Position numbers and translations under genes: made by a program. The notes beneath the pieces were generated by a model. That model saw nothing but the letters and a program-made list of their open reading frames with translations. It was not told where the DNA came from and searched no databases. A stretch of DNA of 63,545 nucleotides, the filler included, from Octopus bimaculoides (lineage: Eukaryota), in NCBI RefSeq assembly GCF_001194135.2. It is 8 parts of 8 records of this genome, joined end to end, with 100 filler letters (N's around TTAATTAATTAA, not from the genome) between each part and the next. Parts side by side here need not be neighbours in the genome. Positions count along the whole stretch, not along the records: positions 22,534 to 42,014 come from NC_069004.1; 7 more parts are not named here. One strand, 5' to 3'. Below are positions 25,732-42,114 of the stretch, piece after piece. Positions within the stretch are counted from its first letter, which is position 1, and the number at the start of each line of letters is the position of its first letter.

Positions 25732-28700
25732 ATGGAGAAACAAAAAACCATAACACCGGACATGGTGGAGAAATACCTGAACGACCATCCTACTTTCATT
25801 GAAGAGTGGTTGAGTAAGAGTAAAGCTAGAAGTACTTTGGATGATAAATACGTGAGGAAGACACCTAGATTTTCAAGTTATGTGGAAAAAGTGATGATGA
25901 AACAAAAAAGGGAAAAGCGACAGTTGATTAGCTCTCTGGTATCGGAAAACGAGCTTTTCAGTGAGCTAGTCAAAGACATTACCCATGAAATAAATGTGAA
26001 TGATCTGAGTCACAAAATTTTACAGAACATCATTAAATTGACTCACTGTGAACGTGGAAGTTTATTCTTCATTGAAACAATTGCACGGCAGAAGTTTTTA
26101 GTTTCGAATCTATTCGACGTCACTTCCACTTCGGCGGTGACGGAAACTTTGCGACAGAACGAAAATGTTATCAGAATTCCCGTTGGTAAAGGAATCGCTG
26201 GTTACGTGGCCGAAACGAAACAAAAAGTCAATATTGTAGATGCTTACGAAGATTCCCGTTTCAACAAAGAGATTGATGAAATGACTGGGTGTCGAACTAA
26301 GTGTTTGCTTTGCATGCCGATTCTTAATTACTGCGATGAAGTTATAGGTGTCGCCCAAATCATTAACAAATTAGATGGGGAATATTTCACAGAAAACGAC
26401 GAAAAAACATTCAATGACTACTTGTATTTTTGTGGGATTAGTTTAAACAATGCCCAGTTGTTCGCAAAATCAGTTGAAGAATACAAAAGAAACCAACAGT
26501 TACTCAATTTGGTAGGAGACATATGTGCTGAGTACTCAAACTTCATGAGTCTCATTGAAGTCATACTGAGTCGGGCCACAGAAATTCTTGACTGTAGTTA
26601 TGTTTGTCTCGGTCTTTTAACTCCTACCAAAAAAGACGATACGGCAGATAAAGAATTGAATCTTTACGAAATGAAAGACGATAAACTGCAGACTAACACC
26701 ACTAATCCAATCTATAGGAGAGTAGCCATGGATTTCTTACAAAATAAAGATCGTTTATTTATGTACAATGTCAAAAAAGATAGCATATTCGGGGAAGAGG
26801 ATTCATTAATTCTCAACACCAACTGCATCGGCGCAATTGCTTTGTTAGATACGTCTGAAGAGAAAAATGGCTGTATTTTTTTCACAAAAGATTCAACAGA
26901 GTTTTTCAACGAGTCTAATTTTACGACAATGGAAACATTCGGATTATTTTGTGGTTTAGGGATTCATAACTGCCAGATCTGCTGGTCGACAATTAGATGT
27001 TTGGCACAGCAGCAAATATCGCACGAAATTCTGTCGTTTCATACGACAGCCGACGAACGGGAAGTAAACAGATTTCTTTTGATGGACAAACGACCTGCCA
27101 GCGACTATGGCATATATACATTTTCGTTCAATGATCTTTATTATTCAGATGATACAACAGTTATAATCGTCGCCTTTATTTTTCTTGAAATGAATGCTTT
27201 GCAGTTATTGGATATCGAGATGCAATTGCTTTACAAGTGGATACTTACAGTGAGGAAGAACTATCGCCCAGTCATCTATCACAATTGGCGACACGGAGTC
27301 AACGTGACACAAAGTTTTTTCTGTATGTTGACCACTGGAGGTATGAAAAAATATTTTTCTGATTTTGAAATGGTTGTTATTCTTGTTGCTTGCCTTTGCC
27401 ATGACCTTGACCATCGAGGTACGAACAATGATTACGAAGTGAAAACGGCTTCTAAATTAGCTACGATCTACAGCTCGTCCACGTTAGAACACCACCATTT
27501 CGACCACTGTATAATGATATTAAATAACGAAAAAACAAACATATTCCAGAATATTCCGGTCAGTGATTACAAAAATGCAGTTCATCTTATAGAGAAAGCC
27601 ATTCTTTCAACAGATCTCTCCTATTATTTCCAAAACAAAACTAGGTTCGAAGAACTCGTTACTGTGAAGGAAAATTTCGAAGATCCGGAAAGACGGGATT
27701 TATTGCTCGCAATGATGATAACGGGTGCTGATTTGTCGGCAATTACAAAACCATGGAGTATTCAAAAGAAGGTTGCATTACTAGTGGCGGCTGAATTTTT
27801 TGAGTTAGGAGATTTACAGAAGAATGTGCTAAAATCTGAAGTTATAGCAATGCTCGATCGTGAAAAGAGGTGTGAGGTACCAAGATTACAGGTTTGTTTT
27901 ATTGATTTTGTATGCAAAACAGTGTTTGAATCGTTAGAAGCGATAAACAAAAACTTAAAGCCGCTCTTGCAAGGGTGTATGAATAATCGAAGACATTGGC
28001 AAAATATTGTTGACGGTAAAGAAGAATTTGACATCGATATCGAGCTGAACAAAACATTGGCTGGTTTCTTAGATTCAGATGATCCAGAATATGGAGAAGG
28101 TTCAGAGAATGCATCACAAATTACTTCCGGCATGAACTCACAAATTACCGAAGACGTAGAACCGACTACATCACTAACAGGAGGATTTATGAAGCAATAT
28201 GAACGATTTAATGATTCAAAAGAATCGTCTGAAATTCTCGGGAGTTTGGATTTTGATCAGTCTGAATATAATAGTTATTTATCGAGTCCGTCAACATCAG
28301 GAATGTTGTCAGTTGTGTCTGTAGATGAAAGCAAAGATATGAAATCTATGTCCGGTGATGAAAGAAGAGAATTAGAAGGAACTCGTATAGATGTTGAAGG
28401 AGAGGATGTATGTAGAATCATGGGAAATAAGATGAATAAGAAGCATATAACAGGGGGACAGGACATTAGCACAAAATTACATTACATACAACCCATTGAT
28501 CCAATTTTCATGCGTAAGAAAACAAGGAAGACTTGTTTGGACGAAATTGTAGAAGACAGGAAATTGGAAATGGAGAAGAAAAAAATCAACTTAGAACCAA
28601 TTCGAGAAAAAGAAGTGTCCCAAAAGATCAGAAGGGCTTCATATCATGTGATTCCTCCACATACTGAATTAAATAAGAGCATCAGTCTTGTGAAATGTCA

Positions 28701-28868
28701 ATCAGACACATTATGTCGGGAATCCGTCCCTGAAGATTCTTTCGTCTGCGAAGTAAAGTCAGCTGAACAAATGGAAATTTTCAGGGAAAGAAAGAGAAGA
28801 TGCCTGCAAAAGTCTAAGACTGATTCAGAAAACGAGCAAATCGAGAAAAGTGTGGTGTGCGTTATTGC

Positions 28869-28872
<4 letters not shown>
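25732..28872 (+). CDS. PDE-A: intronless GAF-GAF-PDEase cyclic-nucleotide phosphodiesterase (PDE5/PDE6/PDE11 family, probably cGMP-preferring), 1046 aa, C-terminal CaaX (CVIA)
   Basis: Uninterrupted 3141-nt ORF. N-terminal helix VEKYLNDHP; GAF-A (GKGIAGYVAET...DAYEDSRFNKEIDEMTG...CMPI...INKLDGEYFTENDE, intact NKFDE motif); degenerate GAF-B; catalytic motifs YHNWRH, HDLDHRGTNN, LEHHHF, ILSTDL, GADLS, KPWSIQ, PRLQVCFID; about 290-aa tail ending VCVIA*. Confidence 0.96.
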
Positions 28873-28922
<50 letters not shown>

Positions 28923-28945
28923 GCAACAACAACAATAATAATAAT
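28870..28945 (+). repeat. (TAA)n microsatellite starting at the PDE-A stop codon
   Basis: gca TAA TAA TAA... Confidence 0.9.
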
Positions 28946-30533
28946 GTTGATGGTGTTGGTTTCTGTTGACTCTTGCTTTTGTCAGACGGTGGTGGAGAAC
29001 AAACACAGACACAAAGACGCGCGCGCGTTCACACATATACACTCACATACATATATATTATAAAGATCATATAACCCCTTGTGGTATGCTGGAATACCAG
29101 AGAGGGAGCTTAATACCACTCTCTGTCGCTCTTAATCTTACCTTCTACTTTATAAATATAAGTTTCAGATACAAAAGCCTTGTCGTTTGCTTGAAATGGA
29201 AAATGGGATATTCTAGCGTTTATTCTTTCTTACTCCGTGGAATTTACTAATGAAAATGGAGTCTGTTAGTAGGTGGTTGGGGATGAAATATTTACTGGGC
29301 ATAAGAGAAAGGTTAGTCTTTGGAATGTAACCTTAAAGATTGCGCTAAAATCAGATCCTGACAATTTTAAGTAACCGGGATCGAAACGTGAATCTAACCT
29401 CTATTTGTAAAACGCTTTCTTTTCGATCTTCAGAGCATATCACCCTATATTTTAGAAGTGGCTGATGAGAACTTTGGCATTTATTGGTTTTTCTCAAAAG
29501 CAACAACAGACCTTATGAAATGAAGTGAAACAATTTCAAACGAAAATCGAGTCCGGTTTTAGACTCAATTTGATTGGAGTTGATATTTCTATAAATTGTT
29601 CGCGACTGTCTTCCTTATAAAATTATGCTGTTTCAAACAAGGCTCAAAGAAATGTTTTCACAATGGGATGAGGAGGAGGCGAGGAGGAGGTGGCGGAGGA
29701 GGAGGAGGAAGAAGGAGGGAGGAACATGGTGAAAATCCTTGCCATTAATTTGGTGTGGATGGGTAATATCAGATAATTCAATTACAACATATTTAAATTA
29801 AACAAGAAAAAAATTGAAATATTATCATCACTTACATAGAAAAATTGAAATTTTATCTTTCAGTATTTTATAAGGTAAAATCTTAAATTATTGACACATT
29901 ATTAATTATGCCTGGAAAAGTCATGGATTACATGGAAAAATGCGAGCATGAAAAGNNNNNNNNNNNNNNNNNNNNNNNNNNNNNNNNNNNNNNNNNNNNN
30001 NNNNNNNNNNNNNNNNNNNNNNNNNNNNNNNNNNNNNNNNNNNNNNNNNNNNNNNNNNNNNNNNNNNNNNNNNNNNNNNNNNNNNNNNNNNNNNNNNNNN
30101 NNNNNNNNNNNNNNNNNNNNNNNNNNNNNNNNNNNNNNNNNNNNNNNNNNNNNNNNNNNNNNNNNNNNNNNNNNNNNNNNNNNNNNNNNNNNNNNNNNNN
30201 NNNNNNNNNNNNNNNNNNNNNNNNNNNNNNNNNNNNNNNNNNNNNNNNNNNNNNNNNNNNNNNNNNNNNNNNNNNNNNNNNNNNNNNNNNNNNNNNNNNN
30301 NNNNNNNNNNNNNNNNNNNNNNNNNNNNNNNNNNNNNNNNNNNNNNNNNNNNNNNNNNNNNNNNNNNNNNNNNNNNNNNNNNNNNNNNNNNNNNNNNNNN
30401 NNNNNNNNNNNNNNNNNNNNNNNNNNNNNNNNNNNNNNNNNNNNNNNNNNNNNNNNNNNNNNNNNNNNNNNNNNNNNNNNNNNNNNNNNNNNNNNNNNNN
30501 NNNNNNNNNNNNNNNNNNNNNNNNNNNNNNNNN

Positions 30534-30697
30534 CTCGAGATTGCGCGATGCTCGAGATAGCGCGATGCTCGAGAATGCGCGATGCTCGAGAATGCGCGAT
30601 GCTCGAGAATGCGCGATGCTCGAGATAGCGCGATGCTCGAGAATGCGCGATGCTCGAGAATGCGCGATGCTCGAGAATGCGCGATGCTCGAGATTGC
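30534..30697. repeat. CpG-rich 17-bp minisatellite CGCGATGCTCGAGA(ATG/TAG/TTG), about 10 visible units, probably continuing into the gap
   Basis: Directly visible; each unit has three CpGs and an XhoI site. Confidence 0.92.
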
Positions 30698-30699
30698 AC

Positions 30700-31240
30700 G
30701 TATTTGTGCTCCCCGACCAGACTACCAACGACAAGCGCCTACTTTTTCCCTAACACCTTGGCCAAACTCTTAAACTCTGTGTTTAACAGAATTATTGGCC
30801 GAAAATTCCCTAGCAGGTCCCCCATTGTCGGCGTCCTTTCTCAGCAATGTTACTACACCCCGGCTAACAACACTAGGAATTCTCCTGTTCTGTTACCAGT
30901 TACGGTAGACATCTGCCAAGAAGCTGCCAAAAAAATCTGGCATGAAACCATAGAATTTGTAGGTCAGACCATCCAAACCGAGCGATTTGCGACTTGTGCA
31001 ATCACTTATCGCCTCATGTATTCCAGTGGCTATAATCGGCTTTTCGCAGAATCTCGCGTCCATCACCGAGAGCCGTGGTAGGCCGTCTAGGTACGAAGTA
31101 ATGTTTGCTAGCGTCAATCCATCTCCCTTCCCAAACAACCGCGCAAAGAGCAGCTGGAAAGTTGCACACATCTGCTCGGAACCGAGCAGCATGCGTCCGT
31201 CCTGACATATCAAAGACTTGATCGTGGTTTTGTTTCCACG
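30700..31240 (-). mobile_element. Decayed L1/Tx1-clade LINE reverse-transcriptase fragment
   Basis: KSLGLDGLTYKFY...NW*QNRRIPSVVSRGVVTLLRKD...GNFRPIILLNTEFKSLAKVL (RT domains 0-2), with stops. Confidence 0.75.
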
Positions 31241-31494
31241 TCAAGTCTCAACCGTTCGGGCCCATCGGACGGCTTTAGTTCCTTCGTGTTTTAGTGCACG
31301 AGCCTAAGGTAAAGCCTGAAATATAAAGAGGTCCGCAAGTCAAAAAGTTTGAAAACCCCTGCGTTAGAGCACAAAAAACAAACTGTAGTCCAGTTCGGAA
31401 AAAAAGAGTAAAGAACACATTTTGTTGTCCAGTTCATGAAAAACGAAAGCTTACAATGCACTCAAGAAACTTTTCAAACAAATTACAATTTTCT

Positions 31495-31737
31495 TATTTC
31501 CTGCGACAAATAAACTCGCAGAGATATAAGTCAACCATAAAACGGTGAATGCCACAGCGTCGTTTATCACTTCGCATCACAGAGGCCCGTATACTCATTC
31601 GAGTTAATAAACACAACGCTGTAGTTCACCATTCTATGTCCAAAATTATAACCAGCAATTTCAGGAATGTGAGAGTACATCCACAACAAATCGCTGAAAA
31701 TCGTGGTTCCTGGTAGAATCGACTCCCGTATGCATTC

Positions 31738-31740
<3 letters not shown>
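31495..31740 (-). mobile_element. Merlin/IS1595 (ISXO2-like) DDE transposase fragment
   Basis: ECIRESILPGTTIFSD...GHRMVNYS...F and downstream VDLYLCEFICRR match the PGTxIxSD / VNHS / YLxEFxWR pattern; broken by stops. Confidence 0.7.
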
Positions 31741-31791
<51 letters not shown>

Positions 31792-31861
31792 TATTGTTCT
31801 TGTTTATATGTTTCCACTGCTGTGTATATGTTGTTATTGCTGATGCCTCTGTTGTTGTCGC

Positions 31862-32535
31862 CTTTTGTTATTGTCTTCGTCCTTTTCTACTCTAGGCACA
31901 AGGCCCGAAATTTTGGGGGAGTGGGGGCCAGTTGATTAGATCGAACCCAGAACGCAACTGGTACTTAATTTATCGACCCCGAAAGGATGAAAGGCAAAGT
32001 CGACCCTCGGCGAAATTTGAACCCAGAACGTAAAGACAGACGAAATACCGCTAAGCATTTCGCCCGGCGTGCTAACGTTTCTTATTTCTTTATTGCCCAC
32101 AAGGGGCTAAACATAGAGGGGACAAACAAGGGCAGACAAAGGGATTAAGTCGATTACATCGACCCCAGTGCCTAACTGGTACTTAATTTATCGACCCCGA
32201 AAGGATGAAAGGCAAAGTCGACCCTCGGCGAAATTTGAACCCAGAANNNNNNNNNNNNNNNNNNNNNNNNNNNNNNNNNNNNNNNNNNNNNNNNNNNNNN
32301 NNNNNNNNNNNNNNNNNNNNNNNNNNNNNNNNNNNNNNNNNNNNNNNNNNNNNNNNNNNNNNNNNNNNNNNNNNNNNNNNNNNNNNNNACCCAGAACGCA
32401 ACTGGTACTTAATTTATCGACCCCGAAAGGATGAAAGGCAAAGTCGACCCTCGGCGAAATTTGAACCCAGAACGTAAGGATAGACGAAATACCGCCAAGC
32501 ATTTCGCCCGGCGTGCTAACGTTTCTGCCAGCTCT
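31862..32535 (-). mobile_element. Cluster of young family-B SINE copies spanning a gap
   Basis: Near-identical copies at about 31862-32080, 32085-32246 and 32390-32535. Confidence 0.8.
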
Positions 32536-32752
32536 CCGCCTTTTGTCAAGGTCATTGATGTAGCTTTTGTTGTTAATATTTTCATGTCTTCTTTCGTTGT
32601 AGTAGTGGTGGTGGCCGTTGTGGAGTTGTTCTTGTTGTAGTTGTTGCTGAGGTGACAGTTCCTCCACGTGCTTGTTTTTTTTCTTTCTTTGTTGTTTTTC
32701 TTTTTTTTTTTTTTTTGGCGATGTTGATACCGAAACTTTTCCAAATATTGCT

Positions 32753-32802
32753 AATGCTCGCCTGCTTCGCTGACGGACCGGATTCGATTCCCGGCCGATG
32801 CA
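32753..32802 (+). pseudogene. 3' half of a tRNA-Gly(GCC)-like pseudogene
   Basis: aatgctcgcctgcttcgctgacggaccggattcgattcccggccgatgca aligns with metazoan tRNA-Gly-GCC (ctcgcctgccacgcgggaggcccgggttcgattcccggccaatgca); anticodon arm mutated, 5' half missing. Confidence 0.6.
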
Positions 32803-32813
32803 ATTAATTTTCA

Positions 32814-33027
32814 AGACGGTAAGCTGGCAGAATTGGTAGCACACCGGGCAAAATCCTTATCGATATTTCGTCTGTCTTTACATTCTGAGTTCAAAATCCG
32901 TCGAGATCGACTTTGCCTTTTATCCTTCCGGGGTCGATGAAATAAGTACCAGTTACGCACTGGGGTCGATGTAATCGACTAGTCCCCTCCCCCAAAAATT
33001 TCAGGCCTTGTGCCTATAGTAGAAAGG

Positions 33028-33098
<71 letters not shown>
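32814..33098 (+). mobile_element. SINE family B, full length with long (ATT)n tail
   Basis: Complete head-to-tail match to the other family-B copies. Confidence 0.85.
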
Positions 33099-33344
33099 CC
33101 ACTTCTTTCAATTTCGTTTCCATTTCTTACCGAGTGTCTTCCCGACACACAGGGCAAAAAAAACTCACTGTATACAGTGTATGCATTGGTAGGCCATTTA
33201 AGAAAACACACTAGAGTGCTCGTTTACAAAGTCATGTGATAGAAAAAAAAGAGAAGAAAGACAGAGAGAAAAGGATAGAAGAAAAAAGATAAAAAGAAAA
33301 TAAGGTAAGTAATGGAGAAAAGGAAAGAAAATTCAAAGCGACAA

Positions 33345-33760
33345 TGCTCTTCTCAATAGGTGTGACGTGCCAGTTAAGACAATCTTTTGCACTTCCTGCA
33401 TGGGTGGTAAGTCAGGAATCATCCTTAAATAATTTTAAGTTCTCTTTTTCTTTTTATCATTCCAAGTGCTCCTAAAATCATTGGTATTGTAACCGTCTTG
33501 AGATGTCACATCTTTTCGATTTCAATTAGTAGATCTTTATATTTTCTGAGCTTATCAAATTCTTTTAACGAGATATTATGGTCACAAGGTATGCGCACGT
33601 CAATCAATAAGCAAACTTTGTTGTTTTGATCCTTCACAACAATATATGCTTCATTAGCTTTGATGGTCTGATTTGTATGTACTGGGAAGTCCCAAAGAAT
33701 CTTTACATTTTCTCCCTCAGTTACAGCCTCATGGAGGTGCTTGTACCATTTGTCAGCAGT
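33345..33760 (-). mobile_element. Restriction-like endonuclease domain of an R4/Dong/NeSL-type non-LTR retrotransposon, decayed
   Basis: KWYKHLHEAVTEGENVKILWDFPVHTNQTIKAN...IDVRIPCDHNISLKEFDKLRKYKDLLIEIEKM...ILGALGMI...QKIVLTGTSHLLRRAL. Confidence 0.75.
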
Positions 33761-33764
33761 TTTG

Positions 33765-34030
33765 ATTGTATGGTGGTGGTTGGCACTCCGTCGCTTACAA
33801 CGTCGAGGGTTCCAGTTGATCCGATCAACGGAACAGCCTGCTCGTGAAATTAACGTGTAAGTGGCTGAGCACTCCACAGACATTTTCAGATATATATTTT
33901 CAATTAATCTTTTTCCACAAAATGGCCAACACAGGAGTGATTGTAGGAGAAAATGCTTTAGCTTCCTCGTGCTCAAACGACCCCAGTCATGGTAGTCAAC
34001 CGCGTGCGGACCGTCGCCACTCCCATTGAC
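33765..34030 (-). mobile_element. 3' end of another LINE/SINE
   Basis: Minus strand gtggagtgctcagccacttacacgttaatttcacgagcaggctgttccgttgatcggatcaactggaaccctcg...gacggagtgcca followed by short repeats; recalled as a common octopod retroposon tail, not verified. Confidence 0.5.
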
Positions 34031-34079
34031 ATCAGCAAAAAAATCTACGAACAATAAAACCACCACAAACACAATCACC

Positions 34080-36200
34080 AACTAGAACAACAACAATGTC
34101 AACGTCCAAAACAAGACCACTAACACCTGCAGCTCCAACAACTACACTAACAAAACCAACAACAATAATGGTAACGAAATCAGACACAAAAACAACTAAA
34201 ATAATATAACAATCAGCAGCAGTAACGACATCTACATGTAACGCTGACTACTACAATAGTATCAACGAGGAAGACAACAATAATGCTTTTTTATGAAGAC
34301 AGTAACGAGAAAACACAGTCAAAGGAAAGGGCTTCCTTCGTAAATATTACAAATAAATAGATCACACATTCACTGTAAGGGAAAGCGGAAGCCATTAAAA
34401 ATTATCAGAAAAATACTCTCCGACCCGTCATCATGGCACTCCTAGGAGAGGAAAAAATTTGCACCGAAAAAAAAGGGATCAATGATACATAGGTGCATTA
34501 ATCGCACAGAAAGAAAGTTACAATACCCTCCTCCAGCTGAAATAGAAAAATATCTAGAAGTGTGGCCTTCCTAGTTTATATCTAAATATGGAAGGCAATA
34601 TAGGACTGTGGTAGTTATCTGCAGTAACGAAGAGGAAGCGCCGAGAATAGCTACAATGTCATGTTGCTCCGACCAGTTGATAATGCTCCCCTTGTACATG
34701 GGACGCCGGGTAACTAAGGTATCAAGGCCAGGGTTTCAAACGTAACTCCTCATAGGGACCAGGTTAGAGTAATGGCTATGCTAGTGGAGCACAGGGAGAT
34801 AATAATCATGAAAATAAGGCCACAATAAAACAGAACAGGAGTGTCTTCTATCCCACTGTGGGGAGGTCGAGAGAGGTGCCTCACCCTGCACCCCCATTCC
34901 CAACGACAGATCCGTTGCAATCGCAAAGAGGACAGCAGCGGGATCTTTTCTGTTTGGTTGCCACTTTTCAATTTCTTCAATTTTTGTTCCAATTGGTTTC
35001 ATATTTGGTGAATTGGAGTAGTTTTGTAAGCCCATTATTGACGTGAAATTCATTTTTGCCATAAATCAATAAACAAAGAGTTACTAGCTTTTAAGGTTTT
35101 CAAATTTTGGGTAATTTTAGCCAATCGAAAGCCACAAACATAAAGGTGTCTCCTATCTCCATAGTAACAAACGAAACAGTTTGGTTTAACGGCTTGGTTA
35201 AATCAGGCACTTTTTTTTTTTTTGCATAATCGTATAAATTCCCGTGTGTACATACAAATTCGCAAAAATGTTCTCAACAGATAAAAGAGTTATATGGCAT
35301 GTGTAAAGCAGAATTCCGCCAATGACAGATTCCAAACCCTCTTTTCTGACTGGGTAAAAATTATCAAATTATAAATCTCTATAACTTTCTTTTAAAATTT
35401 TTCTGGAAAAAGTGAATTAACCCCTGAGATTCATTGTGGGAAATTACATTAATACACCAAATTTTACAATTTTCACTAAACTAAAATTTCCACAGGTGTA
35501 ACCAAACAGAAAGGATCCAATCCAAGCAACGGTAACTACAACGACAAACACAGGAGCAGATAGAAAAAAGGCTAACGGAAATCCTTCTGACAGAAGGGGC
35601 CTCGGACGAAACAAAAATACCCGAGTAGGAGTCGTCGAGCGACCCCCAAAAAGGAAGAGGAGGAGACGGTGAAAATACTCCCCAATTCCCAAAAGTTTGT
35701 GGGCACAAAGCTGAATAACCCCCAAAAGCGCTGCGCCCAGTCTCGAAACCAAAGCTGCAAACCAACAATTTCGGCAACAACAGCAACAACAAGAGACAAA
35801 CCAACTACAACAGCACGAAGAAGTGAAACAGCATTCTCAGCAACAGCGAGGGGGACACGACAGGATCAGCAACAGGTGTAGCCTAAACAAACAAACAAAC
35901 AAACAAAAACAACCAAACCGACAACAATCGCATCAATCACAAGAGACGGAACTAGTAGAACATCTCTCGAACGAGCCTGTCAACTACACAGTTTTACGGA
36001 AGGAGAAAGAGGAGTTGATGGAGTTTGTAGACTCAAATAAAGACAAAATTTTAACCACCGCCATGTATCGTATTTTGAGGAGACGTTTCCCACATGATGC
36101 GGGAGTTTTCAAAAACTTATTGGACAAAAGGGTATTAAAAGGTCTGTCTAAGGACCCAGAAAAAGACCAACCCAAGACTAGGGTATTCGACTGACTCTTT
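34080..36200 (+). mobile_element. Probable degraded LINE ORF1-like and other transposon remnants
   Basis: Broken, charged, low-complexity reading frames with AAC-rich tracts; family not resolved. Confidence 0.25.
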
Positions 36201-36711
36201 TGTTTCTTTCTCTCGTCATTAGAATGGCAACGGTTCCTGAGTTGGCATTTCACTTGAATTGCCACCTTCCTTCAGTACAAAGAAGTGGACAAAACCATTT
36301 CTAAAAAGAACTTTAGCGGCTTCTTCTTTCACGGCTTAAGTACTTCTAATTAGGTATTTAATGCCACTACAATTTAATACTTAACGATTATTTTTCATGC
36401 AGATATAGTCTCCTTTTAATTAACCTAAATGATTTAAACAAAAAAATATGATGTCATACATTAGAGATTGACGTCATGTTTCCAAAAATCGCCGTTCTTT
36501 TGATGCAAATGCAGATAAAGCATTCTAAAGAATGCAGTTTTGTGTAGATTAAACGGCTAGGTACAAAGATATGAACATCATTGCCATACAAATCATTCTG
36601 GTAAGACAAATNNNNNNNNNNNNNNNNNNNNNNNNNNNNNNNNNNNNNNNNNNNNNNNNNNNNNNNNNNNNNNNNNNNNNNNNNNNNNNNNNNNNNNNNN
36701 NNNNNNNNNNN

Positions 36712-39343
36712 ATTTTCCTCAGACATTTTCTCCTTCGATTTTGGTTCAGTTCTTTCATAGCAGTACTAGCAATCCTTTCCTTTTCTTCGGCGGTCATTCC
36801 ATAAGTGTCACTTTCGTTTAAAATCTCAGATGATTGTTGTTCACTCTTGCATATTTCTTCGTCAGGTTCACGAAGTTCTTTGTCGCAGAACGAGACGTTT
36901 GTTGAAGAAAATGCCGGAAACAATGTACTCATTGGTTCGTTGATGCTTGATTTTCCTTCTGTTCCCTCAGATAACGTCCTATTTTTTCTCAATGATGATC
37001 GGCGTTTTATCGTCTTAGTCAACATTGAATCGTCTTTGAGTTTCAATGACAGTGCTTCTTCTGTTTTAGCTTGTTCTTCTGTTTCATGGAATGATAATTT
37101 TTGCGAAGATATTTTTCGAATACCCTCAGTAAGATCGGTTCCAGTTGAACGCGATTTTACAGGTGAGGATTTGGTTGACAGAATGAAATCACTCAGTTCC
37201 AAACCTGCCATGTTCCAAGCCGTAGGAGATGTAGGACTTAAATTACTAGTGATATATCCATAACTCCCGTCAGACCTAGCGCTTTGAGAACGTTGAAGCA
37301 CTATTGTCTGGATACCTCTTGACTTTGTATCCTTACATTTGTCTACTTCTACAGATAAAAGTTTTGGTGAAGGACTGTCTTTTACTGTCTCTAAAACAAT
37401 AATAGATCCTAATAATCCGATTATACTGGAAGATTTCGGAATATTTTCTTTAAAGTTATCCGTTTGACAGGATTCTTCCCTTGATTCTTTTTTTTCTTTG
37501 ATCTTCGGGAAAATTAAGGTAGTTTGGGTACAAATAGACGTGTTGAAGACCTTATCATGTTCAAAATGGGGAGTGGAGATCTCATCCTCTTCAAAACCTG
37601 AATAGCGTGTGAATTCTCTGTAAGTCTTTTGCATTTCGAAGTCAATATCAAAATCTTCTAAGCCGTCATCTATATTGGACCAATGAATCCTATTTTGTAG
37701 CACCCCTTCATATAGAGGTATCAAACTGTCTTGTACTTCACATAAAAGTTGATAAAGCGGAAAACAAATAGCATCGATGAATGCGATTTGCATTCTCGGA
37801 AGTTTGTATCGATTTTCTCGATCCATAAGAGCTGGAACTTCCTGCTGTAAACCTTTTTCTTCGTCTCCCTGCTCGTAGAATTCAGCTGCAACCTTAACTG
37901 CAATTGACTTTTGAATTTCCCATGGCTTTGTGATACCTGAAAGATCAGATGCTGTCATTAAAATGCTCATTAATAATTCGACACTTTCTTGGGTGTCAAA
38001 TACTTTGTTTCCGCTTTCGAGTTTTTCCTTTAAAACTTCACGTTTTGTAAAATAACCTTGCAAGTCTGTGGCCAGAATGGCTTTCTCGATAACTTTAAGA
38101 CCGTACTTGTAATTCGTATCTGGGAGATTCTGAAATAAATTGGTTTCGGTAGTGTTTAATATCATTAAAGTTCTATCTATGTGATGGTGTTCCAAGACAG
38201 ATGAACTGTACAGTATAGCAAAAGGCGATGAGGTCTTCTCTTGAAATGCATTATTTTTACCTCTATGGTCAAGATCATGAACTAGAGCTGCAATTAATAA
38301 GCAAATCTGCTCTAATTCTGTGAAATATAATTGCATGTGACCAGTAGTCAATATACTAAACATCGCCTGCATAACATTAACAGCATGACCCCAATTATGG
38401 TAAACGTTCAGACGATAATTCTTCCTTGCGGTTAAAATAAACCTGTATAAAATATCAATTGGTAAATCTAATACGATTAACACATTTTTTTCAAGTAACA
38501 TCCGAACACACAAATGAACAGTTTCATCCGCTGTAAATGCAGATTCATCGAAGGCATAGGAATATATATTGTACTCTTCAGATGATCGTGGCACTACTTT
38601 TAAGAAAGGTTCAATAAGTTTTCGGTCGCATGTAGTATGATATGCAAGTAACTCGTTCAAGGCTTCTCGCTGTGTTAACACCCTAACAGAACGTTCATAT
38701 AAGCGACAATTATGAATACTAATTCCACAAATCAATGAAAACGTCTCCATTAGATTGATGTNNNNNNNNNNNNNNNNNNNNNNNNNNNNNNNNNNNNNNN
38801 NNNNNNNNNNNNNNNNNNNNNNNNNNNNNNNNNNNNNNNNNNNNNNNNNNNNNNNNNNNNNNNNNNNNNNNNNNNNNNNNNNNNNNNNNNNNNNNNNNNN
38901 NNNNNNNNNNNNNNNNNNNNNNNNNNNNNNNNNNNNNNNNNNNNNNNNNNNNNNNNNNNNNNNNNNNNNNNNNTCAATTGGTGTTATATATTGCGGATCT
39001 AACGGAACTTCCTCCACTTCTTCTTCATCTTTTAATAACTGGAAAACTGTAGACGATTTCGTCGGAGAGGCCGCATCCACTCTGTTTTCTGTCAAATAAA
39101 CACAAATCNNNNNNNNNNNNNNNNNNNNNNNNNNNNNNNNNNNNNNNNNNNNNNNNNNNNNNNNNNNNNNNNNNNNNNNNNNNNNNNNNNNNNNNNNNNN
39201 NNNNNNNNNNNNNNNNNNNNNNNNNNNNNNNNNNNNNNNNNAACTGATGGCGTTTAAATTCCACTTGTGATATTTCTAACAACCGTTCATTGATTATACT
39301 GATTCCGCAAAACGACAAAAAGTTCAGAAATATATTTTCATCA
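36712..39343 (-). CDS. PDE-B: PDE5/PDE6/PDE11-family phosphodiesterase paralog, partial (N- and C-termini in gaps, two internal gaps)
   Basis: Minus-strand segments: 39242-39343 encodes DENIFLNFLSFCGISIINERLLEISQVEFKRHQ (end of GAF-A); 38974-39108 is the start of GAF-B; 36712-38761 is continuous with YHNWGH, HDLDHRGKNN, LEHHHI, ILATDL, TASDLS, KPWEIQ, AEFYEQGD, LPRMQIAFID and a tail to NRRRKCLRK at the gap. No introns in the sequenced parts. Confidence 0.92.
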
Positions 39344-39444
39344 NNNNNNNNNNNNNNNNNNNNNNNNNNNNNNNNNNNNNNNNNNNNNNNNNNNNNNNNN
39401 NNNNNNNNNNNNNNNNNNNNNNNNNNNNNNNNNNNNNNNNNNNG

Positions 39445-41718
39445 ATTTGTGTTTATTTGACAGAAAACAGAGTGGATGCGGCCTCTCCGACGATATCATC
39501 TACAGTTTTCCAGTTATTAAAAGATGAAGAAGAAGTGGAAGAAGTTCCGTTAGATCCGCAATATATAACACCAATTGACAAAAATTTAAAAAGTATCAAT
39601 ATAATCGATATAATTCGATTACAAAGTGAATCAAAAGACATGTCAATCACTGTTGAAGGTGATGTTGGCAGTTGGTTACTGTGTATGACAATAACAAATG
39701 CTATAAGTAAGGTAGTCGGTTGCATAATATTTGTGAGACATTCCAAAGATGTTTTCGACCAAAGTGACATCAATCTAATGGAGACGTTTGCATTGATTTG
39801 TGGAATTAGTATTTATAATTGTCGCTTACATGAACGTTCTGTTAGGATGTTGGCACAGCTAGAAGTAATGAACGATGTACTGGCATTTCATACTACATGC
39901 GACCGAAAACTTATTGAACCTTTCTTAAAAATAGAGCCACGATCTTCTGCAGAGTACAATTTATATTCCCATGCCTTCATTGAATCTGTATTTACAGATG
40001 ATGAAATTGTTCATTTGTGTGCTCGTGTGTTTCTTGAGAAAAATGCTTTGACCGTATTAAATTTACCGATTGATATTTTATACAGGTTTATTTTAACAGC
40101 AAAGAAGAATTATCGTCCAATTATTTTCCATAATTGGCGCCACAGTGTAATGGTATTTCAAATGATGTTTTATATTTTGACAAGTTCACGAATACAATTT
40201 TATTTCACAGAATTTGAACAGATTTGTTTCCTCATTGCTTCTTTATTGCATGATCTTGATCACAGAGGGACAAATAATGAGTTTCAAGTGAAGACATCAT
40301 CTCCGCTCACTACATTATACGACACGTCTGTCTTGGAACACCATCATATAGATAGAGCTATCAGGATGCTAAACACTGCCGAAACCAATATATTCCAGAA
40401 TCTCTCGGCTAAAAATTATCAGCATGGTCTTAAATTTATCGAGAAAGCGATTCTTGCCACAGATGTAAAAGATTATGATGCAGTAATTAATAGTTTTAGA
40501 GAGATAATCAAAGAGGGAGACAAAGCTTTTGAGTGTCAAGAAAACATTGATTTACTAATAAGCGTTATAATGGCAGCCTGTGATCTTTCAGCTGTTACAA
40601 AGCCATGGCCGTTTGAAAGGAATGCTGCAGTTAAGATTGCAGCCGAATTGTTCGAGCAGGGGGATAAAGAAAAAACTTTACATCAAGATATCGAAGATCT
40701 CATGGATCGAGAAAAAAGATACAAATTTCCTGAAATAGAAGTGGAGTATTTTGATTCTCTATGTGCTCCGCTTTATCAAGTTTTATCTGAAATGGATTCT
40801 AATCTGACTCCTCTGTATGAAGGGGCGTTGAACAATCGAAATCACTGGGCAGATATAGTTGAAGGTGTCAAGTTTTTTGACATTGATTCCGAAATTGAGG
40901 TTATTTATAATGAAGAACTGAGTTGGAAAGAAGCAAAAGATCACAGAATTGCAACACCTAAAATATCACCAGGCATTCAGTCTGAAAATGCTGCGTTAGG
41001 AATGGCAACATCGTCTACTCAGACTACTTTTGTTCTCGCTGAGTTAAATGAAGCAAGTCTACGACAACGTCAGAAGATATCTCAAACGGACGATGATTTA
41101 ACTTCAACGTCTCATTTCGAATCTCGTGCTTTAACGAACGCCATGAATAGTTTTTATACTGAAAAACTTCTCGCAGTAACGATAAAGCCAATGGGTAAAA
41201 GAATCCGAAAAATTAATATAGGGACGCAAGTGAAATTTTCAAATGGTTATAGTGAGACCTCTGGCCACTCTGCATTTCCTAGTAGAAGCACGTCCTTTGA
41301 ACCATCCAAAGCATTTTCAGATTCACGGATAAAAACAAAGACATCCGCTACAAGCATGTATCTCGATGGAGCAGAAGCAGCGATGAGTGATGAGTCTGCT
41401 CAAGAATTACTGAAGTTAGCTACTTCTTCGATGGACTTAAGTAGCTGGGCAGCTTCTAAGATAACATTAGAAACGTCTGAACAAAAGCTGAAAACTTTGA
41501 CACCTATGATCTCTAAACATACGGTAGACAATGTGGAAAAATATGCAATGAGTGCAGAAGAAAGGGAAAAAATTTCTAGTATTGCAATGAAAGAACTCAA
41601 TCAAAGTCGAAGAAGAAAATGTTTAAGGAAAATTCCACTGTGTAAACCAATTGCTACAAGCATGAAAACCAAAAGGCCGGACGATTTTATGAAAAAGTAT
41701 GTGTGTACGATTTCATAA
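39445..41718 (+). CDS. PDE-C: PDE5/PDE6/PDE11-family phosphodiesterase paralog, 5'-partial, altered purine pocket, C-terminal CaaX (CTIS)
   Basis: The frame is open from the gap edge (ICVYLTENRVD...), so the TTG start in the ORF track is not the real start. Degenerate GAF-B; FHNWRH, HDLDHRGTNN, LEHHHI, ILATDV, AACDLS; tail ending KKYVCTIS*; AATAAA at 41783-41788. Confidence 0.93.
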   Translation: MCVYLTENRVDAASPTISSTVFQLLKDEEEVEEVPLDPQYITPIDKNLKSINIIDIIRLQSESKDMSITVEGDVGSWLLCMTITNAISKVVGCIIFVRHSKDVFDQSDINLMETFALICGISIYNCRLHERSVRMLAQLEVMNDVLAFHTTCDRKLIEPFLKIEPRSSAEYNLYSHAFIESVFTDDEIVHLCARVFLEKNALTVLNLPIDILYRFILTAKKNYRPIIFHNWRHSVMVFQMMFYILTSSRIQFYFTEFEQICFLIASLLHDLDHRGTNNEFQVKTSSPLTTLYDTSVLEHHHIDRAIRMLNTAETNIFQNLSAKNYQHGLKFIEKAILATDVKDYDAVINSFREIIKEGDKAFECQENIDLLISVIMAACDLSAVTKPWPFERNAAVKIAAELFEQGDKEKTLHQDIEDLMDREKRYKFPEIEVEYFDSLCAPLYQVLSEMDSNLTPLYEGALNNRNHWADIVEGVKFFDIDSEIEVIYNEELSWKEAKDHRIATPKISPGIQSENAALGMATSSTQTTFVLAELNEASLRQRQKISQTDDDLTSTSHFESRALTNAMNSFYTEKLLAVTIKPMGKRIRKINIGTQVKFSNGYSETSGHSAFPSRSTSFEPSKAFSDSRIKTKTSATSMYLDGAEAAMSDESAQELLKLATSSMDLSSWAASKITLETSEQKLKTLTPMISKHTVDNVEKYAMSAEEREKISSIAMKELNQSRRRKCLRKIPLCKPIATSMKTKRPDDFMKKYVCTIS

Positions 41719-41970
41719 TTAATTATTGAGAAACAAACTTTTTGTATTAGCCTAAACAACTGCAAACCAACAAGCAAACGTAAATAAACAATGATATGTA
41801 CGTGAATATATGTATACTTATTTGTGATTATATGTATATATGTATGTATATAATTAGTTAGTTATCCGTAAGTCACACTCAATATTACCAAGTGCAATAG
41901 CCAGCGCGAAACCAACGGTGACATTCTGTCCTGTTATATACCATAACAAGTAATATACTACTCGACAACG

Positions 41971-42002
<32 letters not shown>

Positions 42003-42114
42003 AGTATATATATANNNNNNNNNNNNNNNNNNNNNNNNNNNNNNNNNNNNNNNNNNNNTTAATTAATTAANNNNNNNNNNNNNNNNNNNNNNNNNNNNNN
42101 NNNNNNNNNNNNNN

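Follow-up and report, generated by a model that had tools for sequence, protein, structure and literature searches.

The window analysed here, 63,545 nucleotides of Octopus bimaculoides DNA joined from eight parts, contains between positions 22534 and 42014 (NC_069004.1) three long open reading frames (ORFs) with class I cyclic nucleotide phosphodiesterase (PDE) catalytic domains, referred to as PDE-A, PDE-B and PDE-C. We focus on PDE-C, in which both the purine-reading glutamine and the glutamine that orients it are replaced by glutamate. An exact-protein look-up placed this gene on chromosome CM046624.1 of assembly GCA_001194135.2, at ~10.42 Mb. PDE-A (25732-28872, plus strand) is a complete single-exon GAF-PDE gene of 1046 residues which ends with the CAAX box CVIA and keeps both glutamines. 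PDE-B (ORF 36549-39095, gene extent 36712-39108, minus strand), the Gln-keeping sister of PDE-C, is interrupted by runs of N, and a further piece of it encoding the end of its GAF-A domain lies on a 102-bp island between gaps (39242-39343, minus strand). The PDE-C ORF spans 39457-41718 on the plus strand, while the coding sequence as assembled (39444-41718, plus strand) comprises the end of GAF-B, a linker, the catalytic domain, a disordered tail, a CAAX box and a stop codon. A fourth such gene, PDE-D, which encodes 1060 residues, is found ~5.6 kb downstream of the PDE-C stop codon, just beyond this part of the window.

An earlier note on this DNA described the PDE-C reading frame as undisrupted. 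The frame is indeed open, but only from the edge of an N gap (39344-39443) which forms its 5' boundary, where it reads ICVY-LTENR, and the GAF half is missing from the assembly. The gap therefore interrupts PDE-C in the assembly without the gene being truncated, the GAF half being absent from the former and not from the latter. Positions 22534-42014 contain seven internal N gaps, three of them within 38762-39443, and an identical 20-mer, GATTTGTGTTTATTTGACAG, ends both the PDE-B and the PDE-C contigs at the start of a tract subject to gene conversion between the two genes (see below). This conversion explains the gapped state of both genes in O. bimaculoides. PDE-B is head-to-head with PDE-C in this assembly only; O. 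vulgaris and O. sinensis carry the two genes in tandem. The inversion of PDE-B is probably a scaffolding artefact caused by repeat collapse and a mis-oriented contig.

The catalytic domain of PDE-C matches the Pfam profile PF00233 with 237.8 bits (cut-off 24.8, E = 1.7e-70) over 40126-40821 (plus strand, as are all PDE-C features below), which corresponds to ORF residues 224-455 and profile positions 1-236 of 238. Its best sequence match in the PDB, using phmmer, is human PDE5A (E = 2e-67, ~40% identity), followed by PDE6. From the metal-binding Asp through the last pocket position, the alignment with PDE5A is gapless (KPWPFERNAAV/KPWPIQQRIAE, AAELFEQGD/ATEFFDQGD and PEIEVEYFD/PSMQVGFID for PDE-C and PDE5A, respectively) and, with PDE5 numbering set by Asp764, it therefore places the two Glu residues and a Leu of PDE-C on Gln775, Gln817 and Phe786. 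The Glu in the purine-reading Gln817 column is encoded by GAA at 40738-40740, in PEIEVEYFD, and the one in the orienting Gln775 column by GAA at 40615-40617, in KPWPFE. Tyr612, which precedes HNWRH, is replaced by Phe (TTC, 40126-40128), the clamp Phe820 and its neighbor Ile821 by Tyr-Phe (TAT TTT, 40747-40752), and Phe786 by Leu, in AELF (TTG, 40648-40650). The departures of PDE-C are more numerous than the earlier note described and comprise, in PDE5 numbering, Y612F, I768V, Q775E, V782I, F786L, I813F, M816I, Q817E, F820Y and I821F.

In contrast to the base-recognition residues, the metal site is conserved. The His of HNWRH (His617, 40141-40143), the His-Asp pair of HDLDH (His653 and Asp654, 40249-40254) and the Asp of ACDLS (Asp764, GAT, 40582-40584) are retained as metal ligands, and PDE-C, like the five other PDE-C-type copies described below, keeps H613, H617, H653, D654, H657, E682, H685 and D764. 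Most of what had been read from the sequence alone thus proved correct: both GAA codons and AELF in PDE-C, the corresponding motifs of PDE-A (PRLQVCFID, KPWSIQ and AEFF) and PDE-B (PRMQIAFID, KPWEIQ and AEFY), and the integrity of HNWRH, HDLDH, EHHH and the ACD aspartate. The change from AEFF or AEFY to AELF requires qualification, since the Leu is present but private to O. bimaculoides and not part of the PDE-C signature. The structural comparison proposed in the earlier note also pointed to a PDE5-like protein: an AlphaFold2 model of the domain has a predicted local distance difference test score of 90.1, with a weak stretch only at the equivalent of the flexible H-loop, and Foldseek searches of the PDB aligned it with PDE5 and PDE5/6 chimera structures with template-modeling scores of 0.90-0.91 and root-mean-square deviations of 1.2-1.3 Å. 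PDE-C is thus confidently predicted to adopt the all-helical PDE fold. As for a pseudo-enzyme, no catalytic or metal-binding residue is lost, only base-recognition residues being altered.

The two Glu substitutions are more than a chance finding. Among the 118 nearest database homologs, the Gln817 column contains Gln in 117 (and one gap), the Gln775 column Gln in 115, Glu in two and His in one, and the Tyr612 column Tyr in all. The Phe820 column contains Phe in 115, Trp in two and one gap, the Tyr of PDE-C retaining the aromatic ring with an added hydroxyl. In a broader set of 393 aligned domains, Gln817 was found in 366, Met in one and Glu in 26, the latter coming from the PDE-C copies of octopus, from molluscan PDE10-like proteins and from a single metagenome fragment. 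The claim that this Gln is essentially invariant was overstated, since an alternative exon conserved in molluscan PDE10-like genes encodes Glu in this column. Over 84 columns conserved to at least 95%, PDE-C departs at 21-22, PDE-B at 11-14 and PDE-A at 11. The PDE-C-specific departures include positions 612, 768, 775, 782, 817 and 820, which we take to line the nucleotide pocket in PDE5 structures.

Such a pattern could also be displayed by a decaying retrocopy, or the Glu codons could be assembly errors; the gap-ridden O. bimaculoides locus, and a young gene family with variable copy number and frame breaks (in a PDE-B copy of O. vulgaris and O. sinensis and in one O. sinensis PDE-C copy, Osin_C2), lend some weight to both explanations. 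Orthologs in two related species bear on this. In O. vulgaris, whose locus was fetched via the PDE-A ortholog, PDE-A, PDE-B and PDE-C are in tandem on one strand, and PDE-C (P0285) is a single uninterrupted ORF of 1026 residues with KPWSFE, PEMEVKYFD and the CAAX box CKIS. Searches by protein cluster and by profile revealed as PDE-C-type genes CAI9740186.1 and CAI9740193.1 in O. vulgaris and XP_029650737.1, XP_029650744.1 and XP_029650740.1 in O. sinensis, the O. sinensis copies being read from loci L005 and L006 (locus L003 stops short of a PDE-C copy). A first, word-indexed search, in which octopus matches did not exceed 61% identity, had suggested a species-specific gene, a possibility ruled out once these orthologs were found by cluster look-ups, locus walking and a profile query. 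Phe612, Glu775, Ile782, Phe813, Glu817, Tyr820 and Phe821 are common to all six PDE-C copies from the three species, while ~17 other octopus paralogs keep Tyr, Gln, a Val-type residue, Gln, Phe and Ile. DNA was read for five of the PDE-C copies, and each has GAA at both Glu positions and TTC at Phe612; all other paralogs have CAA or CAG at the Gln codons and TAC or TAT at Tyr612. F786L and M816I occur in O. bimaculoides alone, Phe786 being kept by the PDE-C copies of O. vulgaris and O. sinensis. As the same GAA codons are found in three independent assemblies, base-calling errors are excluded and the change is older than the species split. Recent decay, which the earlier note proposed to recognize by orthologs retaining Gln, is excluded as well, and A-to-I editing, as that note argued, cannot restore Gln, since GAA can only become GGA, GAG or GGG. 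The remodeled pocket with an intact metal site is thereby substantiated, with at least seven near-invariant positions changed identically in six copies.

Rates of substitution, expressed as the ratio of non-synonymous to synonymous changes (dN/dS, by the Nei-Gojobori method, between O. bimaculoides and O. vulgaris unless another pair is named), further bear on the retrocopy explanation. Whole-gene values are 0.20 for PDE-A, 0.75 for PDE-B and 0.80 for PDE-C, the last of which might by itself suggest decay. However, the high values of PDE-B and PDE-C are due to their disordered C-terminal tails (0.27, 1.0 and 1.86 for PDE-A, PDE-B and PDE-C, respectively), the catalytic domains having values of 0.14, 0.45 and 0.48. 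With the additional copies included, the catalytic domain of PDE-C gives 0.45-0.61 between O. bimaculoides and O. vulgaris or O. sinensis (one-sided Fisher p 0.004-0.065) and 0.10-0.14 between the C1 and C2 copies (p ~0.003), i.e., significantly below 1. When the 212 observed substitutions were placed at random, a stop-free frame was retained in 0.02% of 5000 trials (P ~2e-4), with a mean of 7.8 stops, and each of the six indels that distinguish the O. bimaculoides gene from its O. vulgaris ortholog comprises whole codons. Within the tail, the last ~55 residues, which hold an MSAEEREKIS segment, the basic stretch RRRKC and the CAAX box, are largely conserved. The marks of a processed pseudogene (dN/dS ~1, stops and frameshifts) were not found in PDE-C. 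The catalytic dN/dS, the stop-free frame and the in-frame indels argue that PDE-C is maintained by selection, its catalytic domain being about as constrained as that of its Gln-bearing sister PDE-B, and we consider decay or assembly error extremely unlikely.

Regarding the origin of the gene, neighbor-joining analysis of catalytic domains grouped the octopod genes in one clade (100% bootstrap), with a protein of Argonauta hians and an unnamed protein from ENA among its members. This clade branches beside molluscan, brachiopod and fly PDE5/6-like sequences, although the deeper nodes are weak (36-45% support). The A. hians protein (P0133), the single match in that species, groups with another paralog and keeps Gln817. 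PDE-B and PDE-C are sisters (100% bootstrap), with stem branches of 0.128 and 0.281, respectively, and by parsimony the Glu state would have arisen on the PDE-C stem. The synonymous divergence between their catalytic domains (dS ~0.75) is about five times that between the species (~0.14), so the duplication is much older than the split between O. bimaculoides and O. vulgaris. Between these two events, the PDE-C catalytic domain evolved about twice as fast as that of PDE-B and fixed Y612F, Q775E, V782I, I813F, Q817E, F820Y and I821F on its stem, while the metal-binding and hydrolytic residues were kept.

Both genes belong to a tandem array, located on a single octopus chromosome, of GAF-GAF-PDE-CAAX genes with one exon each. 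The array has at least four adjacent genes in O. bimaculoides, with P0126, P0289 and P0291 as further genes of this type on the same chromosome, and consists of twelve consecutive gene models in O. vulgaris (CAI9740184-CAI9740195). PDE-A, PDE-D, PDE-E and O. vulgaris PDE-C are complete one-exon coding sequences from a PDE5/6-like N-terminus to the CAAX box. Canonical animal PDE5/6/11 genes have many introns. Given this difference, retroposition followed by tandem duplication would be the natural explanation of the array. With human PDE5A and PDE6, PDE-C shares the catalytic domain, metal ligands and predicted fold described above, the GAF-A/GAF-B plan (as seen in the O. vulgaris ortholog) and, with PDE6, a CAAX box; it differs from them by its seven-residue pocket signature, its single exon and its long, fast-evolving C-terminal tail. 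Its nearest non-cephalopod relatives are invertebrate PDE5/6-like proteins (Drosophila PDE6, CG8279, and molluscan "cGMP-specific PDE-like" proteins), which have the same GAF-GAF-PDE plan and 36-40% identity but, unlike PDE-C, all keep Tyr, Gln, Gln, Phe and Ile at the pocket positions. The genes of these invertebrate relatives are multi-exon, and Drosophila PDE6 is prenylated.

The regulatory half of PDE-C is best seen in O. vulgaris, since in the O. bimaculoides window only the end of GAF-B is present owing to the gap at 39344-39443. In the O. vulgaris protein (P0285), GAF-A and GAF-B precede the catalytic domain (precomputed matches to PF01590, PF13185 and PF13492), and an NK...F...DE motif was read by eye in GAF-A. 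In the adjacent intact PDE-B/PDE-C pair of O. sinensis (L005 3063-6389 and 10001-13078), residues ~100-425, which cover both GAF domains, show a proportion of synonymous differences (pS) of 0-0.14, versus 0.4-0.5 in the catalytic domain and 0.6-0.9 in the tail. The counterpart of this tract in O. bimaculoides lies at 39444-39700 in PDE-C and 38974-39108 in PDE-B. Gene conversion therefore keeps the two GAF halves nearly identical and stops just before the catalytic domain, leaving the pockets distinct. At the other end of the protein, the putative prenylation motif CTIS (41704-41715), identified by sequence, is preceded by the basic stretch RRRKCLRK; it is CKIS in O. vulgaris and O. sinensis, and paralogs end with CVIA, CVIS or CVIC.

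These features would also suit PDE-C as mainly a regulatory or low-activity subunit which forms a heterodimer with PDE-B, as do the alpha and beta subunits of rod PDE6. Its pocket would then bind or buffer nucleotide, or confer asymmetry on the dimer, instead of turning substrate over. The GAF-A/GAF-B halves carry the dimer interface in PDE2, PDE5 and PDE6. PDE-B and PDE-C are sister genes, adjacent in O. vulgaris and O. sinensis; their converted GAF halves are nearly identical, and both have CAAX boxes as do the PDE6 subunits. Nevertheless, the metal and catalytic ligands kept in six of six copies would be needless in a non-catalytic subunit, the catalytic constraint on PDE-C equals that on PDE-B, PDE9 remains an enzyme with a comparable Glu (see below), and GAF domains so alike would equally fit two separate homodimers under one regulator. 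We thus view this role as rather unlikely, albeit compatible with the activity proposed below for PDE-C.

An engineered precedent is the Q453E mutant of human PDE9A2, which remains active although its Km for cyclic GMP (cGMP) rises 25-fold, from 0.11 to 2.8 µM, and its kcat is halved (PMC3069055). Its kcat/Km is decreased ~50-fold for cGMP and ~5-fold for cyclic AMP (cAMP), the cGMP/cAMP selectivity falling from 337 to 29 (PMC3069055). In the crystal structure, Glu453 is 3.2 Å from Glu406, the natural holder of the Gln, and molecular dynamics simulations fitted only with Glu406 protonated (PMC3069055). In PDE5, the Q817A substitution is cited in that work as lowering cGMP affinity ~60-fold without affecting cAMP (PMC3069055). 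The PDE9 mutant resembles PDE-C in having a Glu in the invariant-Gln column beside a second Glu; in the mutant, the two are within hydrogen-bond distance and one is probably protonated. It differs in being a single engineered substitution in a distantly related PDE family, with none of the other pocket changes of PDE-C. Glu406 had been considered as the positional equivalent of PDE5 Gln775, but this was rejected on the basis of the published numbering (Asp402 +4 vs Asp764 +11).

A natural precedent was found in molluscs. Among 150 representatives of an exhaustive search, Glu occupies the Gln817 column in three clusters besides PDE-C, two of which are molluscan PDE10-like proteins (Ostrea edulis and Nucella lapillus). 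An oyster-seeded search returned 121 aligned domains with 42 Glu and 79 Gln; the molluscan PDE10-like sequences compared include P0184 and P0396-P0452. The named bivalve and gastropod PDE10-like matches carry Glu, apart from a single Crassostrea virginica cluster and a Gln segment in the Pinctada model, while all the named non-mollusc matches (nemerteans, an annelid, a bryozoan, echinoderms, hemichordates, cnidarians, arthropods, rotifers and amphioxus) carry Gln. In C. virginica, the Gln and Glu forms differ only in the ~28 residues before VGFLVGICLPCYEVM. In Pinctada imbricata (VSWD01000010.1, locus L007), a Gln exon (19411-19494) is followed ~570 bp later by a Glu exon (20060-20149), with a common exon downstream of both, and the two look like mutually exclusive exons. 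The preceding exon is possibly duplicated too (18551-18664 and 19067-19183 of the same locus). Glu in the Gln817 column is hence a natural alternative that molluscs have conserved, which speaks for such pockets being functional. These isoforms, annotated in RefSeq as "probable 3',5'-cyclic phosphodiesterase pde-5", are, like PDE-C, GAF-containing class I PDEs with a Glu (..LP[HQ]LEVGF..) and conserved metal ligands. However, they belong to another PDE clade, their change is confined to the Gln817 column (Tyr612, the clamp Phe and the residue of the Gln775 column being kept), and their Glu comes from an alternative exon beside a Gln exon, whereas PDE-C is a separate gene. In a literature search which covered few subscription journals, no description was found of a natural Gln-to-Glu class I PDE, be it PDE-C or the molluscan PDE10-like Glu form, or of the octopus PDE expansion.

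We propose that PDE-C, as part of an octopod-specific tandem array of PDE5/6-like genes which have a single exon and probably derive from a retrogene, is functional and still hydrolyzes a cyclic purine nucleotide. In its pocket, the Gln-Gln amide pair would be replaced by a Glu-Glu carboxyl-carboxylate pair with a shared proton. The donor hydrogen bond to the O6 of guanine would be lost, leading to a higher Km for cGMP, a flatter discrimination between cGMP and cAMP and possibly a pH-dependent activity. By engineered precedent, the predicted change in function is quantitative and not qualitative. The enzyme would be membrane-anchored through farnesylation and, because gene conversion keeps the GAF halves nearly identical, it would share the regulatory input of PDE-B, answering to the same GAF-borne signal with a second catalytic output. 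On balance, we hold with moderate confidence that PDE-C is an active, farnesylated and GAF-regulated PDE in which a probably proton-sharing Glu-Glu pair weakens and flattens purine recognition.

Alternatively, PDE-C could have switched to another substrate or ligand suited to a more polar, acidic pocket, such as a non-canonical cyclic nucleotide (cCMP, cUMP or cIMP), a cyclic dinucleotide or a base that offers additional hydrogen-bond donors. Seven coordinated pocket changes, by which two carboxylates and a Tyr hydroxyl are gained while the Tyr612 hydroxyl is lost, and a stem branch that was accelerated and then conserved are consistent with such a switch. No particular substrate is positively supported, though, the aromatic clamp and the residues that determine pocket size are still PDE5-like, and the single Q-to-E change in PDE9 merely weakened purine binding. 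We therefore regard a new substrate as quite improbable. Among the three options raised in the earlier note, a low-activity pseudo-enzyme is the least likely, PDE9 Q453E being active (PMC3069055), while altered substrate handling and a heterodimer-partner role cannot be separated by sequence.

Several observations weigh against PDE-C being an active enzyme with merely weakened purine recognition. Y612F, F820Y, I821F and I813F are without tested precedent and could alter more than affinity, and the Glu-Glu pair of PDE9 is best taken as an analogy and not as a homologous pair. No PDE-C ortholog was found outside the genus Octopus in the searchable collections. The catalytic dN/dS of PDE-C (~0.5) is relaxed relative to that of PDE-A (0.14), and the elevated ratio of its tail (40900-41703) reflects 91 non-synonymous versus 14 synonymous changes (Fisher p = 0.018, pN > pS). 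Finally, the frameshift in Osin_C2 is a sign of family turnover.

The purine-reading Gln is regarded as a hallmark of all class I PDEs. Almost every PDE inhibitor is anchored by it, and the disputed "glutamine switch" model, which concerns cAMP/cGMP selectivity, centers on this residue. PDE-C, in which this residue and its orienting partner were naturally replaced by Glu and which is maintained by selection, can be seen as an evolutionary experiment on the role of the Gln, for which PDE-B, next door, Gln-bearing and with the same regulatory domains, provides a matched control. The PDE10-like Glu exon indicates that the invariance is not absolute and, together with PDE-C, makes two independent systems bearing on the role of this residue. 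What is new is a naturally Glu-substituted class I PDE pocket, its engineered counterpart, PDE9 Q453E, being known. The practical stakes are modest, concerning basic enzymology and cephalopod signaling and no new kind of system. A more speculative proposal, which we hold to be doubtful, is that molluscs evolved at least twice (the octopus PDE-C gene and the PDE10-like Glu exon) a "Glu-type" class I PDE pocket for a task beyond the Gln-type pocket, which may be the hydrolysis of non-canonical cyclic nucleotides or an activity gated by pH through the carboxyl-shared proton. If true, the "invariant glutamine" would be a naturally switchable specificity element and not a fixed requirement.

Some further features of the array were observed in these species. 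One PDE-B copy looks broken in O. vulgaris and O. sinensis into ORFs of 206 and 896 residues, split after GAF-A (L002 33006-36334 and L003 10001-13329), with the same RIEMAS* ending in both species. The frameshift of Osin_C2 (L006 10001-13101) is near codon 160. Such broken copies may be real lesions, small introns or assembly indels. The EHHH motif, kept by PDE-C, is altered to LEYHH (PDE5 H683Y) in PDE-B of O. vulgaris (L002 33644-36334) and O. sinensis (L003 10639-13329), and PDE-D (L001 17680-20862) reads LEHYH (H684Y) in addition to D656E. As a lead on expression, a name reported in an O. sinensis gonad transcriptome fits the octopus GAF-PDE family (PMC11202624).

Elsewhere in positions 22534-42014, Pfam scans of seven other ORFs gave no match, nor did a 191-residue minus-strand ORF between PDE-A and PDE-B (33506-34081). 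The tandem repeats are ordinary microsatellites and a 17-bp array at 30534-30697 (9.6 copies of CTCGAGAATGCGCGATG) which abuts a gap of 578 N.

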